Below are positions 1,806 through 30,133 of a stretch of 64,000 nucleotides of DNA, in pieces (the stretch's first letter is position 1; every line of letters starts with the position of its first letter). The position numbers and the translations under genes are program-made. Origin of the DNA: Calcarisporiella thermophila CBS 279.70 (taxonomy: Eukaryota; Fungi; Calcarisporiellomycota); contig NW_027192221.1 in the NCBI RefSeq assembly GCF_041956535.1, forward strand, positions 62,001-126,000. Direction: 5' to 3'. Below the pieces are notes generated by a model. That model did no database searches. It saw only the letters and a program-made list of their open reading frames with translations, and was not told the origin of the DNA.

Positions 1806-3646
1806 TTCGGATGTGAATGCAGAGCAAGGTTATAAATTATCGAGATTATAAAGAAGTGGAGCTATAAGACCCTTGGAGGTTTATACCCGTCGTGAAATTT
1901 CTCGAGCGCTCCAACTTACGTGATTGTGTGACTGCCTTGTGTGGGAAAATGTAAGATTGGGATGCATCCTCCGCTGACAGTTTTTTGATTTCTAATACTT
2001 GTCTAACCCAACCTTGACGTATTCAGTTCAGGTGAAAATACAAGCCACCGAATCGTTTTGGGGGAATGGAGCGATATCTGCAAAACTCTTATTTATCAGG
2101 CTCTTCCCTCTCCCCCCCCCATCCGCCGACGGTGACTATTCCAGGTCGGCTGTGGCCAATGGGGAATCAATACTCTTGTTGGACAGACTTTGCGAGGGAG
2201 TACTAGCCAAAATGGTTGGTGAACTCGCCTATTGCCTACATTATCCCGTTCGTTTCAATGGAGATCTTTAGCTACTACTACTTCCCCCAGTGTGGCTTCT
2301 AGAGGGTAGGTATAAGATCATCCGGCTCAGGAAGTCACGCCCGCCATCTCGTTACCATATCGACTTGTGCCGCAGCTTTTTACCTGCCTAAATTTGTCCT
2401 ACAGAAATTATAATGTGGATAAGCTCTAAAAAATGTTCTGAAACCAAAGTTCCTCCTTCTGAAAGAGAGGCGTTTTCGATTCCGTTACGTAGAGAACATG
2501 TTTGAGGTTGGCGGTAGAGTGCAGGATTTGCTATAGGATAAATGAGCCTGATTTGGAAGGGTATAGAGAGGATGAGCTGGCCCTCACAAAGCAGACTTGG
2601 ACACCGGATGCAAAACCATGGTCGAGCTTGGCCGCCTCTGCTCTCTCTATGTCGATGGCCTCCCCTCGATCACAGCGTTGAAAGTGTGCTGCTGCGAAGG
2701 CCTAAGAGCACAGGCTGGACCCATTGGAGAATGCTCTGCCCCAATTGCGGAATGGTGCTGCGGACCGCATCGAGTGGTTTTCGGTGGCCCGTTTGTGCTC
2801 TCGGACTAAGTCTTTCCGAGCGCTCTGACTGTTTTTCCGTTTAAAGGAAAAATTTATAACCTCCCCTCTCGGATTTGTAATGCCATGCAACCTGGTGAAT
2901 CACGGCGGCCTTTCGCAGGAGGCAGAGGGAGATATTCGCCATTCCTAAACACCAGCGTGGCCGCAAACACGCCCAGAGGACAAGACGAGGACCAGAAGAG
3001 ACGAGAGCGATGGAAGATTCTAGGTTGAAGGGAGGCGAGGAGCCGCGCGCTTGGAGGTTTAGGCTTGCATTGGAAAATGGCTCGTTGAATAAGAATCTGA
3101 GCATGAAATCGCCCCCGTGGTACAATATGACGCTCTCCAATTTTTCCTTTTTGACTAGATGATGAGGGGATGAGTAGTCTGTTGCCGTATGCGACCCATG
3201 CTCACCTGAGACGTTCGCAGGAGCTTGCCCTGACGGCGAGGCAGTATTCAAGGGGCGCGCGCCGCTGCGTCGGCTGACATGTGATCACCGGAGAGCCGCG
3301 TCGAACAGGGCCAGAGCTCTGTCGAGGAGAGGGTGTGTTAATGTGACTGCGGAATCAGCCGGGGCCATTGGAGCGGAAACAAGGGAGATAATTCTGACAT
3401 TGCGATGATTTTTGTGGCAAAATAGATTTGTCAGTTAATTTGATATAAAAGAATCGCGTAGAAATCCCCCTCTCTTCTTTCTCCTCTCAAATACTAGCCC
3501 CCCCGGAATCGCTGGCTTGGCAAGGCGATTTCTCTCCCAACGAATTCGAACCTGACGCTGCCTTCTCCCTGCTATATTCATACCTCCTATATCCTCTTTG
3601 CACCACTCCACCACTTTTGTCTTGCACCTGCTTTCTGATTTCTAAT

Positions 3647-5505
3647 ATGAGTGCATTACTAATAAAGACGCTGGCCCTGTTCCTAGTGCTAGCAATCACT
3701 GCTTTTGCGCAGGAGGATCACCATCATATGGCCATGCCCGAAAATCTCGACACTTCGTTGCCCCCGTCGTACATGACCTACAAGGAGTCCCGGGGCCTCT
3801 TAGTATCACATATTGTCTTCATGGTGCTTGGGTACGGCATACTTCTTCCAATGGGTAAGTTGCTTATTAATAGCCCCCATCCAAGGAAGATTTGACCAAT
3901 GTCTTTGAAATGCAAGGCATGGCGCTCGGTATTTCCCGGTCGCGTTGGCATATTCCCTGCCAAGTGTTTGGCATTGCGGCTATCATTATGGGCTACTTCT
4001 TTGGACATTCCTACGGCCATTCCACCCCGGATTTCTACCCTAACAATCTCCACCACAAGTTCGGCAAATGGCTACTTGCTCTGACTTTCGGCCAAATTTT
4101 CTTGGGCGTGGCACGCAAAATCGCAAAGCGCAAGGAGGCGAAGGTAAAGGGCTCGGACTATACCTCAGTCCCATCTTCCGAAACCGAAGCCATCCGCCTG
4201 GTTCACAACGGAGGCGACGGGGACGACGAATTATTATTGGAATCCCCTGTGAGCATGTCGGGAGCCCGCTCGTGGTTTGCGCACTTGCCAATGCCGGCTC
4301 GCGCTCGCTATCACCAATGGACGGCCCGCATCCCGCGTGTTGTTTCTGTCCCCCTTGGGTATGCGACATATATGCTTTCGGCCCTATTGTCCCGCGCTTT
4401 CACGTCCACTGTCCTTTTCTGGTCTCACCGCATCCTTGGCCGCCTCATCTTAATCCTGGCTTTCATGCAAGTCATTCTGGGGGCCGTCGCGTTCACGGGT
4501 GGATGCCAAGCGTGGGAGGTCCTTGGCTGTATTGCACACTACATCAAGGGCGCCATCTTCTTCTGGTACGGTATCCTCACCTTTGCTCGCTTCCTCGGCT
4601 GCTTCGCGGAGTGGGGCTGGGCTTGGAACGTCGTGCCCGACCATGAAAAATACATCACCGCCGAATTCATCGAGGCTTTTACCGTGTTTCTCTACGGAAT
4701 CACCAACACATGGATGGAGCACTTTGGACAGAGCTCGGAATGGAGCCACAAGGACTTCCAGCACGCAAGTCTGGCGTTCATGTGGTGGTGGGCGGGTCTG
4801 TGCGGAGTGTTATTGGAGCTGCGCTGGGTTCGCCGGAGGTTGGACCGAGTCGTGGGCCATCTCGATACAAGTGATAGCCAATCTCAACCATCGTCGCTGC
4901 AACAGCAGCAGCAACACCCTCAGTCGCATCAGCGGACCTCCGAGGAGGTGTCCGACGATGCTGGCTCCTGCTCATCGTCAACCACGGCCGTTTTCCCAGG
5001 CGATGCCCGCTCGCGGCCCAATACGCTGAAGCCCCAGCGCTATGGATTTAATCCCTTCGTCGCCCTCATCATTCTAGTGACAGGGATCTCGATGGGCAAC
5101 CACCATCAGCTGACCGCCTTTTCCACTCAGATCCACTGGCTCTGGGGGCTCTATCTCGCCCTCTTTGCCGTCTTCCGCCTAATTACCCAGCTCCTTCTCT
5201 ATATCCGACCACCCACCACGGTGAAGCCTTCACGTCCCCCCTCGGAAGCCTTGGCTGCATTTTGTCTGACGGCTGGTGGAGTGCTGTTCATGATGTCCAA
5301 CCAGGACATGGTCGACCTGTTGATGAAGCTGGGCGTGGATCCGATGTTCTTGATCAACGTGGTCACAGCCATCACCTTCATTGTCCTGATTTGGACCTGC
5401 GTGCTCATTGTCATTTCCTATTCCGGACCCCGGTTTAATCCCGCATCGTCAACCACCAGCACAAAATCCGACGCTCGAAAGGATAGTGGATATGACCATG
5501 CATAA
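3647..5505 (+). CDS. Ytp1-like multi-pass membrane protein with signal peptide
   Basis: Signal peptide MSALLIKTLALFLVLAITAFA, one intron (~3854-3916, GTAAGT..AAG), many TM helices, and motifs HYIKGAIFFWYG, EHFG..WSHKDFQH and HHQ..FSTQIH typical of the fungal Ytp1/DUF2427 family. Confidence 0.82.
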
Positions 5506-6275
5506 TTTTCTATTTATCTCCATTGCGCCGAAAGGACATGTTTTAATCTTGAACTTTTGTTTTCCATTTAAAATCCTCCTCGGAGCATGCTTGCACTTAA
5601 GCACGTTCTAGTATATATTTATCTAGCCTTTTTTTTTATTTTTCGTTCAGCTTATCATCACATCTTCCCTTCACCCCCCCCCCCCTCTCCTCTTCCTCCT
5701 CTCCTCTTGTATTTATCACTAATGTCGTGGAGATGATCGAATATAATATAATAGTGTTTTTCCTTGATTTTTGCTTCTGCAGCTGCTCTCCTCGGGCGTC
5801 GGCACTAGATCTCGACCTAAGCCCGATCTGATTTGGCCGTTAACCCGGGAAAGCAAAATAATTACCAGAAAATTTTTGTGTGACCCAAGGGTGGTTCGTT
5901 CTATTTCTTGTTATTTTCCCTTCCTTCCAAATGCTATCTGGTGCTTGATACACGCTCTTAGCGCCTTTTTCATCTACCTTTACTCGACTCATTCATTTAT
6001 TTATTATTTAATTTTCTTTCTGTATTCCATCCTTGCTATTGAGCTGGTCTCAATAATCACGTGAATCTCTCCCTTTTCATTGAGATCATATACTTGATAT
6101 ATTGGCTCAACATCCCGATCATCATCGCGAGAGAACCGACTCACCATCCGATAGAAAGAAAGGTAACCTCTAAGAATCCAATGTCTTTTTGCTCTTCTTG
6201 CGACTGCCTAGGGAGATTGAGCTAAGCATCTCAAATCGATTTTTTCCATCCACAGGTCTGGGTTAAGACGCAATA

Positions 6276-27261: not shown

Positions 27262-30133
27262 ATGCTGGGCACACGCCCAAATTCCTCCAACCAGCGCCGG
27301 TCGCCGGTACGACCTATATCCGCCCCGCAACCAGCTCCTATACAACCCCGTGTCCTTGTTGTTCCAGCCGTGATGCCAACCATCCGCCTCCCTGCACGCT
27401 CAGATGCTATCATCTGTGACCCAATTAAGAAGCGGTATATATTAAGGGAATCGGAATTAAATGCTAGAGAGGAAGTGGGTCATCCTTTCCTTAAATTACA
27501 GTGATATTTGTTTTTTTATTTACTTGTTCAAAATAATATAGTCAAAGATGAGGTTACCCGATACACAATCGCGTACGATGTTCCCCAGTTTTCGTTGGAA
27601 AGATAAACACGACATGGTTGTTAATTTTCCACAATACTCTATGGATAAAAAACATACCTTCGATGAAGATGAGATGAAATCAAGTGATGAAGTAAGACTT
27701 GATTGCAATTCATAGCCCATTTGATATTCATTACTAAATATTGTAAATCTAGGAAAGTGACATTTGTGTAAAGCTGCCTAGCGATAGAGCTGCAGGCATT
27801 ACTGAAGATGAGAGCGAAGATGAGGATTTCACGGATGAGGAGGAGGAATGTTCATCTAATACCACAGCTCCATTGCAGGCCACTGATGAACCCTCTGATG
27901 ATGATAATCGTCAGGATAAACGAGTAACCTTTGAGGAGGCTCCACGACGCGGAGGTGATAAGAGACAGAGTTCATTGAATGTCTTTGCGCACGAGTTTAC
28001 TCCTGCATCTAATAATGAAAGTGGCATAAAACGAGAGGAAAATAATAGGATTGTGAGTATTTATGTCCAGATACTCCAACTTATTTCGAACCTTATTTAA
28101 TTTACCTTCAATCATGGACTTAGACTGCGAAGCCAGTTGTTCAGGCAAGGTCAGCCCACCCTGGCATGCACTACAAGGACTGGGTGCAACCCACGCACAT
28201 TCCTGCAATGGATGTCTCCCTCTGGCAAGACTTTCAGGATAAGATAGTACAGCACCTTGGCGAACGCGTTGAGACGGAAATCGAACGTCGATTCAAAGGC
28301 CATATTGCTAAACTCTCCGTCGAGAATCGCATTGCTCGTCCCGACCCAAAGCTCGAAGAGGAACTCGACAATCTACGCCGTAAGCAAATGAAGGCAGAGA
28401 TCGAAGCCAGTCAGTTCAAGGTTCGAGCGGCGGAGCTAGAAGCCCAGGTGCGTGAGCTCGAACGTGTTAAAACTCGGAATGCGGAGCTAGAAGCACGCTT
28501 GACGGATTCACAAACTGCGCCAGAGATTCATGAGGAATTGGCGCGTTTGCGCATGAAGAATCAGGATCTATCGCGTGATAGAGACAAAATCGACCAGTTG
28601 ATAGCGCGAAACTTGTATCTTGAGATTGAGGTTGAGCAAGCGCAAGCAGAGGTCAGTAAGCAATCGCAAAAGATGGCCAACGTCGAATCAGAGCTTTCTG
28701 CCGCAAAAGCAGAGACCTCAAATCTGCGCGCACGGAATGAGCAGTTGGAAAATGAGATGGATGGTAGACTCGGCGAAATCGATCAGCTGATGAAGCGGAT
28801 CGAGAAACAAGAAAACGAAAAGCGCAATTTAGAGGAGGAGCAAGCCCAACTCGCCCGAAAGAATGGCCAACTTGAGGCCCAACTCTCTGCCCGCCAGGCA
28901 GAAGCCGAGGAACTAACATCGAGGTACCGTTTGCTTGAGAGTGAAATGACCGGAAAGCATGGCGACATCACTCAACTTCGGATTCGAAACCACGAGCTTG
29001 AGAGTGAAAAGCGCACGATGGCGCAGGAGCTTGGCCATGCCAATCAAGAGCTCGAGGCGAAGAAGATTAAACTTGACGAACTCTGGGCACGATGCCAGTC
29101 GCTCGAAGAGCAACTTAAGGATATGGAACATATTCGCGTCCGAAGCGAGAGCTGGCGAAGTGACAAAGCTAAACTCGAAGAACTTGAAGAGCTTTGCCAT
29201 GACCTGGAGCGGCGTAATGCCCAGCTTGCTCAACAGGCTCGTGAGGATCGTGCATCGGCGGAGGAGGCGTATGGCATGTATCGCGAAGCGGAGCGCAAAA
29301 ACAAAGCACTTCTAGAGAATGAGACTCATTTGGAGCGCGCCTATGCACAACTCATGGGTCGTGAGCAGGAGTTCCGTGACCGTGCTGAAGAGCTGCAGGA
29401 GGAGAACAACCGTTTACAGCAGTTGGTCGAAGAAAGGCAGGCACAACTTGAGGAGGTGGTGCACCATTTCACTGAGTTACAGCACACAGAAGAGGAAACT
29501 CGCATGCAGTGGGAACAGGCTGCTGAGGAATACGAAGAGCTCTTGGAAAGATTCCGAAATATGGAACGGGAAAATGCCACCCTTCGCTCGAGCTTAGCAT
29601 CTCTGGTGGACGCGGCAGCCAGATCTCACCCGCCCTATCATGGTCATGGAGAGAAAGAAGAAGAAGGAGTGGTGATAGAAGAGGACAAACGAGGTGGAAT
29701 GGAGGTACTGCAGGAGATGAACGAGGGCCATCACGCTGAGACTGCCGCATCACTAGAGCCCGAGGATATACCGAGCCGAATCTCCGCCCCAAAAGCGAAT
29801 GGTACAACAATCAATGCAAACAGGCGCGCCTCCGTTTCAAGTAATGGCACCATTCATTCGCGTCGAAGATCGAGCAGCTTATTGAGTGCAAATAAGGAGC
29901 GAAAGCACAGTAACCAGCGCATCAGCTTTGATGCCTCACAGCACACATTAGAGCCATCTCAGGGGAAAACTAGTAAATCCAGCAAACGACTTTCGGCTGG
30001 GTCTGCGCGATCCGCACGTTCGGACGACAACAGCCGTGCCTTTTCCCCTGCTACCTCAAATGGAAGCAAAGATAACCCATGGGCCCAGAGGACCAATGGC
30101 GAATTGGCGAACAACGCATGGTGGAAAGAGTAG
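27262..30133 (+). CDS. ~890-aa protein: PAM2 motif + long coiled coil + C-terminal AWW (Upa2-like architecture)
   Basis: Exons 27262-27474, 27542-27691, 27753-28052 and 28124-30133 splice in frame with GT..AG. PAM2 SSLNVFAHEFTP at 27969-28004, ~400 aa of heptad E/Q/R/L-rich helix, terminus NNAWWKE*. Confidence 0.82.

Follow-up and report, generated by a model that had tools for sequence, protein, structure and literature searches.

A conserved fungal coiled-coil protein with a PAM2-like motif and a near-terminal WW peptide as a possible counterpart of Upa2 outside Basidiomycota

The best-understood case of endosome-coupled mRNA transport is that of Ustilago maydis, in which Upa2 (UMAG_10350; 2121 amino acids) is a scaffold of endosomal Rrm4/Pab1 messenger ribonucleoproteins (mRNPs). 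Four PAM2 motifs of Upa2 bind the MLLE domain of Pab1, its C-terminal coiled coil self-interacts, an effector region (amino acids 339-599) has been defined by deletion mapping, and a C-terminal GWW, the partner of which was unknown when Upa2 was described, is required for endosomal shuttling. According to published surveys, Rrm4 and Upa1 extend to Mucoromycota, whereas Upa2 orthologues are found in Basidiomycota only, as a first, sequence-only reading of the DNA studied here had stated; we found no later report in the literature of Upa2 outside Basidiomycota, nor of a GWW partner. Here we describe a gene of Calcarisporiella thermophila (Calcarisporiellomycota, NCBI) that lies in a stretch of 64,000 nucleotides (nt) of contig NW_027192221.1, hereafter the window, to which the coordinates of the gene refer. 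Its product of approximately 890 amino acids has the same order of elements as Upa2: a PAM2 in a disordered N-terminal part, a coiled coil towards the C terminus and a short tail with xWW.

The window gene is real. It consists of four exons at 27262-30133 on the + strand, in a model based on GT-AG sites, reading frames, the contrast in GC content between exons and introns, and comparison with two relatives: a paralogue of 1264 amino acids (contig C23 of the same genome) and an orthologue of 1447 amino acids from Endogone (P0127). Searches and folds for the window gene were made exon by exon, not on the joined 890-amino-acid protein. Its elements are as follows.

27262-27474, + strand: exon 1, 71 amino acids, beginning at ATG, from the open reading frame (ORF) and frames; disordered, basic, Pro-rich N terminus
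27376-27414, + strand: conserved N-terminal peptide PTI-x-LP-x4-A-x-I (alignment A6)
27475-27541, + strand: intron 1, 67 nt, GTGGGT...TAG, GC 0.254, from splice sites and phase
27542-27691, + strand: exon 2, 50 amino acids, phase 0, with SR..F...VVNFP and the onset of an acidic run
27692-27752, + strand: intron 2, 61 nt, GTAAGA...TAG, not present in the paralogue, in which exons 2 and 3 are fused
27753-28052, + strand: exon 3, 100 amino acids, with VKLP, an acidic tract, DKR and the PAM2-like motif (alignments A3 and A5)
27768-27779, + strand: VKLP, another [IV]-x-LP peptide, shared with the paralogue and Endogone
27969-28004, + strand: PAM2-like motif SSLNVFAHEFTP in exon 3 (Pfam PF07145)
28053-28123, + strand: intron 3, 71 nt, GTGAGT...TAG, matched in position by an intron of the paralogue
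28124-30130, stop at 30131-30133, + strand: exon 4, 669 amino acids, rod and tail, from the ORF
28214-29620, + strand: helical rod of about 470 amino acids, heptad-periodic, a presumed dimerizing coiled coil (AlphaFold2, heptad contrast)
28214-28336, + strand: conserved first helix, W-x-[DE]-F/L-Q/E... with the block R-x-E-T/A-E-I-x-R/K-R...H-x-A...VE
28604-28630, + strand: family signature ARNLYLEIE, within the rod
29621-30130, + strand: disordered Ser/Arg/Ala-rich tail, 170 amino acids (AlphaFold2, composition)
30074-30124, + strand: near-terminal W motif NPW-x5-G-E-L-x4-WW, with KE and the stop after it (alignment A4)

The introns of the window gene are all of the form GT...TAG, measure 61-71 nt and are in phase 0, and GC content is 0.37-0.54 in the exons as opposed to 0.25-0.32 in the introns and flanks. 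Exon 1 has a GC content of 0.535 (0.32 upstream of it); exon 2, at 0.373, is the weakest of the exons in this respect. Exon 1 aligns with the first exon of both the paralogue and P0127, and the position of the intron that follows it (..E) is common to all three genes; exon 2 aligns, in colinear order, with the first part of the second exon of either relative. The paralogue was modelled at locus L012 with three exons (2014-2229, 2301-3089 and 3154-5940), its first and last introns falling at the same places as those of the window gene. Comparison thus supports each of the four exons as well as the PAM2 and the WW peptide, because each is aligned or kept in the paralogue and Endogone. The spliced protein proposed from the sequence alone, with its PAM2-like motif in a small exon, is therefore borne out by frames, splice sites and comparative alignment. 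Intron 3 may have an alternative in-frame acceptor approximately 20 nt downstream of 28123. The products of the window gene and of the paralogue were not among the protein-collection matches, although other C. thermophila proteins were, and the two genes may be unannotated or modelled differently in the public record.

By its sequence, the window gene is a member of a conserved, unnamed fungal family that so far has two copies in Calcarisporiella and one in Endogone. Exon 4 is 36% identical to the paralogue (36-42% in the rod), and the paralogue keeps the PTI.LP and V.LP peptides, the acidic tract, DKR, the PAM2-like motif, the first helix, ARNLYLEIE and ER.NA.LR. When the paralogue was used as the query in a region-restricted search, P0127 was found (E = 1.6e-19) as the sole relative outside C. 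thermophila; this is the hypothetical protein BC937DRAFT_88006 of Endogone sp. FLAS-F59071 (Mucoromycota). Compared directly by BLASTP, exon 4 of the window gene and P0127 align at 209 bits (E = 7e-61) and are colinear over 545 amino acids, and P0127 retains PTI.LP, the acidic run, a canonical PAM2, ARNLWLEIE and the WW tail. The three genes, which are 30-36% identical, thus have the PAM2, the signature of the rod and the W...WW peptide in corresponding positions, in line with the expectation that the PAM2 and the near-terminal WW would be conserved in orthologues.

Other searches returned little. A word-index protein search with exon 4 gave no match at E <= 1e-3, and two metagenome scans (alignments A1 and A4) gave pattern matches, none of which encoded a relative. 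When exon 4 was run exhaustively with phmmer against 1.84 billion representatives, six matches were obtained, all spurious (a repeat protein and generic coils); no basidiomycete protein was returned, and the Endogone orthologue was also missed. As P0127 was missed despite its BLASTP E value, the blank result of phmmer is not evidence of absence. The nearest ESM-Atlas cluster to P0127, which we treat as a lead only, is a PAM2-bearing cluster of 1960 amino acids (score 0.86).

In the three-way alignment, the disordered N-terminal regions are conserved in a few islands; the PAM2 block is among these, and its columns N, A, F and P are invariant. Scanning with the Pfam PAM2 profile (PF07145), as had been suggested from the sequence alone, gave a match at SSLNVFAHEFTP, as anticipated, at a score (12.5 bits, E = 0.13) below the gathering threshold of 20 bits. 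The paralogue motif, STFNIFAPAFMP, scored 11.4 bits (E = 0.28) and the canonical Endogone motif, SLNVMAPEFIPP, 19.5 bits (E = 7e-4), such that no copy in the family reaches the threshold. The window motif retains the consensus L, N, A, F and P. The Leu and the Phe are the critical residues for binding to the MLLE domain of Pab1 (PMC11572963); both are kept in the window gene and in Endogone, and the paralogue has Phe where the key Leu is expected. The window protein therefore resembles the PAM2 proteins of PF07145 (ataxin-2/Pbp1, Paip1/2, eRF3, Tob, Pan3 and Upa1) in having the 12-residue xxLNxxAxEFxP in a disordered region, with the MLLE(Pab1)-binding Leu and Phe present, whereas the remainder of the protein has no relation to theirs. 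The family also has conserved N-terminal peptides of its own (PTI.LP and V.LP); in alignment A6, columns P39, T40, I41, L43, P44, A49 and I51 are invariant among the three sequences. Exon 2 of the window gene also holds VVNFP, and the [IV]-x-LP peptide may be duplicated there.

The MLLE domain of C. thermophila Pab1 was folded together with the PAM2 segment. The prediction reached an ipSAE of 0.35 (best control, 0.02) and was rated as weak support; the partner had a predicted local distance difference test (pLDDT) score of 52, and runs agreed in at least 72% of contacts. The ipSAE mark is met by 51 of 78 solved complexes and by 2 of 108 mismatched pairs, and a pass at 0.60 or below, which 5 of the 78 solved complexes give, fails more often than it holds when the pairing was not probable beforehand. 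Solved PAM2-MLLE complexes exist, so the fold indicates likeness to them and not binding. Proteins of the family probably bind Pab1 through PAM2.

AlphaFold2, run with the three-sequence alignment, predicted four long helices, separated by short breaks, across exon-4 residues 31-499 (residues 31-71, 75-125, 134-332 and 349-499). The heptad contrast of this rod is 9.5 standard deviations above that of shuffled sequences (z = 9.5), and the rod is conserved in the paralogue and Endogone. Its first helix (31-71; pLDDT 71-82) contains the invariant columns W34, R48, E52, I53, R56, H60, A62, V66 and E67, and the signature ARNLYLEIE recurs unchanged in the paralogue and as ARNLWLEIE in Endogone. On this model, proteins of the family probably dimerize through the rod. 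No coiled-coil family scored above the Pfam cut-off for any exon of the window gene, for the paralogue or for P0127, and a PDB profile search returned generic coils alone (GCN4-fusion, SMC and phage-needle; E >= 2.7e-4). A golgin, a spindle-pole-body protein or another named coiled-coil family, which had been raised at the outset as a competing identity, accordingly found no significant match in either search.

The rod gives way to a tail (exon-4 residues 500-669) with pLDDT below 50, in which only 14 of the 170 columns are invariant. Five of these (W653, G659, L661, W666 and W667) lie in the last 17 residues (alignment A4), and all three proteins have in common the near-terminal peptide W-x5-G-x-L-x4-WW. 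The window protein ends in ...NPWAQRTNGELANNAWWKE, with AWWKE as its last residues; together with the AlphaFold2 model and the heptad contrast, this upholds the long coiled coil, disordered tail and AWWKE terminus read from the sequence alone. The paralogue has the C terminus NPWSKFVEGERELTTGTWWS, its tail end being ANPWSKFVEGERELTTGTWWS, and P0127 ends in ...WSQGQLANQSWWTTKNEAK within a continuous ORF (...GQLANQSWW). The residue that precedes WW is A in the window protein, T in the paralogue and S in Endogone, and the proteins run to their stops as AWWKE, TWWS and SWWTTKNEAK, respectively. There is one Trp in exons 1-3 of the window gene and there are eight in exon 4, with no GW repeats. In the paralogue, a further WW (EEDWWPKK) lies internally where the tail begins, at residues 726-727 of its exon 3 (L012, 3154-5940).

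Upa2 works together with Rrm4 and Pab1, and like that of U. maydis, the genome of C. thermophila carries both Pab1 and Rrm4-like genes. Four MLLE loci were found in its 28 Mb, namely Pab1 and three genes that combine an RRM with a C-terminal MLLE; these three are listed here by locus.

G000:C21:285431-288619: Rrm4-like gene L002
C5:558097-561291: Rrm4-like gene L003
C36:105578-108754: Rrm4-like gene L004

An ORF search with L003, which is 100% identical to VTP21DRAFT_9321, matched basidiomycete Rrm4 orthologues and had the other two Rrm4-like genes among its best matches; VTP21DRAFT_5186 (P0008) and VTP21DRAFT_8074 (P0012) are probably L002 and L004. Endogone has one Rrm4-like gene, P0013. U. 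maydis has one Rrm4 as opposed to the three Rrm4-like genes here, and these three paralogues share an internal conserved MLLE-like block, MTERT...DIVDMLLTL.RKERSLCLFN. A check of the genome for Rrm4 and Upa1, as had been suggested from the sequence alone, thus gave Rrm4-like genes, and no Upa1-type adaptor was seen in a quick look, in which the 11 FYVE loci found all lacked a zf-C3HC4_3 RING or Ank_2 match within a few kilobases; the genome scans for FYVE, RING and ankyrin give lower bounds. PAM2L ([DE][DE]FxY) was absent from the FYVE loci, where alone it was scanned for. RING and ankyrin matches that adjoin the Rrm4-like gene on C21 were considered as a candidate Upa1 and rejected, as the RING lies in a minus-strand gene and the ankyrin on the other strand. 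The RING gene in question, at L025 2105-3653 (G000:C21:281604-283152, minus strand) next to L002, has an SPRY-type look by eye and a Glu-rich stretch.

Taken together, these observations point to a mechanism in which the proteins of the family would be long, probably dimeric coiled-coil scaffolds. The rod would pair two protein arms, and the disordered tail would engage a partner through the conserved W...G.L....WW peptide at its end. Since the interface logic is that of Upa2 and both host genomes contain Rrm4-type transporters, a role as an mRNP/endosome scaffold appears the likeliest, and we tentatively propose, as a reading that may well be right but could readily fail, that the window gene encodes a protein that scaffolds Rrm4/Pab1 mRNPs on endosomes and so does outside Basidiomycota what Upa2 does within that phylum. 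The stronger version, in which the window family would be the Upa2 equivalent of Rrm4-dependent transport in Mucoromycota-grade fungi, possibly a true, highly diverged orthologue, with W-x5-G-x-L-x4-WW using the same receptor as the GWW of Upa2, is rather doubtful; if it is true, a PAM2/coiled-coil/WW scaffold would be an ancestral part of fungal mRNA hitchhiking. Binding to Pab1, dimerization, a partner for the WW peptide, an endosomal location and common descent with Upa2 are all points that we infer from these features.

Several observations weigh against a counterpart of Upa2. The prediction with the MLLE domain is weak and may reflect memory of solved PAM2-MLLE structures, and the PAM2 scores of both Calcarisporiella copies fall under the Pfam threshold. 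Upa2 has four PAM2 motifs where one is present here, and its 2121 amino acids compare with 890-1447 in the family; the coiled coil of the window protein takes up a much larger share of its length than that of Upa2 does. In place of the Gly of GWW the family has A, T or S, and the WW of Endogone stands 7 residues before the stop and not at the very end. The likeness was drawn from the described features of Upa2, and no sequence feature of the family points specifically to endosomes. No Upa1-type locus came to light in the quick look described above. Finally, no orthologue from Mucorales, Glomeromycotina or Mortierellomycotina was among the matches listed, although Rrm4 is found there; this counts for little, because one of the searches missed P0127. 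The Upa2-like scaffold proposed from the sequence alone is supported in part, namely in its architecture and in the conservation of that architecture; its endosomal role is proposed by analogy with Upa2.

The same parts could serve other ends. A conserved PAM2 combined, in disordered sequence, with Trp peptides that dock into partner pockets is also the logic of GW182/TNRC6, as the discussion of the Upa2 paper sets out, and the protein could be a post-transcriptional regulator linked to the poly(A)-binding protein (PABP) and unrelated to endosomes. In such a regulator, PAM2 would anchor the protein on poly(A) tails, the Trp peptide would recruit an mRNA-fate factor (for example, a deadenylase or a granule component) through a Trp pocket, as the W motifs of GW182 do, and the rod would multimerize it. 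No membrane- or lipid-binding domain was found in Pfam, and other PAM2 genes of the genome are of RNA-metabolism types (L005, described below), both as such a role would have it. However, exon 4 has only eight Trp in its 669 amino acids, and in place of scattered GW repeats the protein carries one short W cluster, located at the C-terminal end like that of Upa2; the window protein is without the GW-repeat Argonaute-binding region, the RRM and the UBA of GW182; its long coiled coil is foreign to proteins of that type, GW182 having none; and the family co-occurs with Rrm4-like genes. We consider this regulator unlikely, although it deserves serious attention.

Less probable again is that the protein is a structural or motor-adaptor coiled-coil tether (of the cytoskeleton, an organelle, the spindle pole or the Golgi) and that its PAM2-like peptide binds something other than Pab1, such as the MLLE of an Rrm4-like protein, or has a different role. 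The absence of any coiled-coil family at the Pfam threshold and the generic nature of the PDB profile matches (GCN4 and SMC-type) speak against this, as do the PAM2, which is canonical in Endogone and close to canonical in the window gene, and the Pab1 MLLE fold above its controls. Even so, the heptad rod makes up most of the protein, sub-threshold similarity to Rab11-FIP3, intermediate-filament and GAS coiled coils was seen, Atlas neighbours include TMF/golgin-type and myosin-like clusters (leads only), and the paralogue has Phe for the key Leu of PAM2. That the motifs arose by chance in a coiled-coil gene of low complexity and fast evolution, or that the upstream exons lie outside the transcript, is very improbable. 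Each Calcarisporiella PAM2 match is insignificant when taken alone, exon 2 is low in GC and the splicing has comparative support only; set against this, three genes of such low identity keep the same elements at equivalent places, three of the few invariant tail columns are Trp in the last 17 residues, intron positions are common and all four exons are colinear. It is this conservation that makes chance unlikely. A scaffold of endosomal mRNPs remains our preferred, if tentative, reading.

In a field in which Upa2 has not been traced as far as its partners, the family is a concrete candidate: small in size and conserved, it shares the three interface types of Upa2 and occurs in genomes with Rrm4-like genes. 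Its short W peptide and single PAM2 would be simpler handles than the full-length Upa2 for finding the receptor, and as C. thermophila is a thermophile, its proteins may suit biochemistry and structural work. If the analogy with Upa2 fails, the window gene still encodes a conserved, uncharacterized, probably PABP-binding coiled-coil protein.

Two further loci of the genome carry PAM2-like sequences. L005 (G000:C16:134192-137230, minus strand) has an N-terminal PAM2, LNPMAKAFVP, at 23 bits, above the Pfam cut-off, followed by CCCH zinc fingers and by an ORF that resembles an Smr domain by eye; judged from these domains, it is another PABP-docking RNA-metabolism protein. L007 (G000:C4:1321380-1324409, minus strand) contains a very acidic ORF that ends in a PAM2-like LNVNAPVFVP, which scored 15.2 bits.

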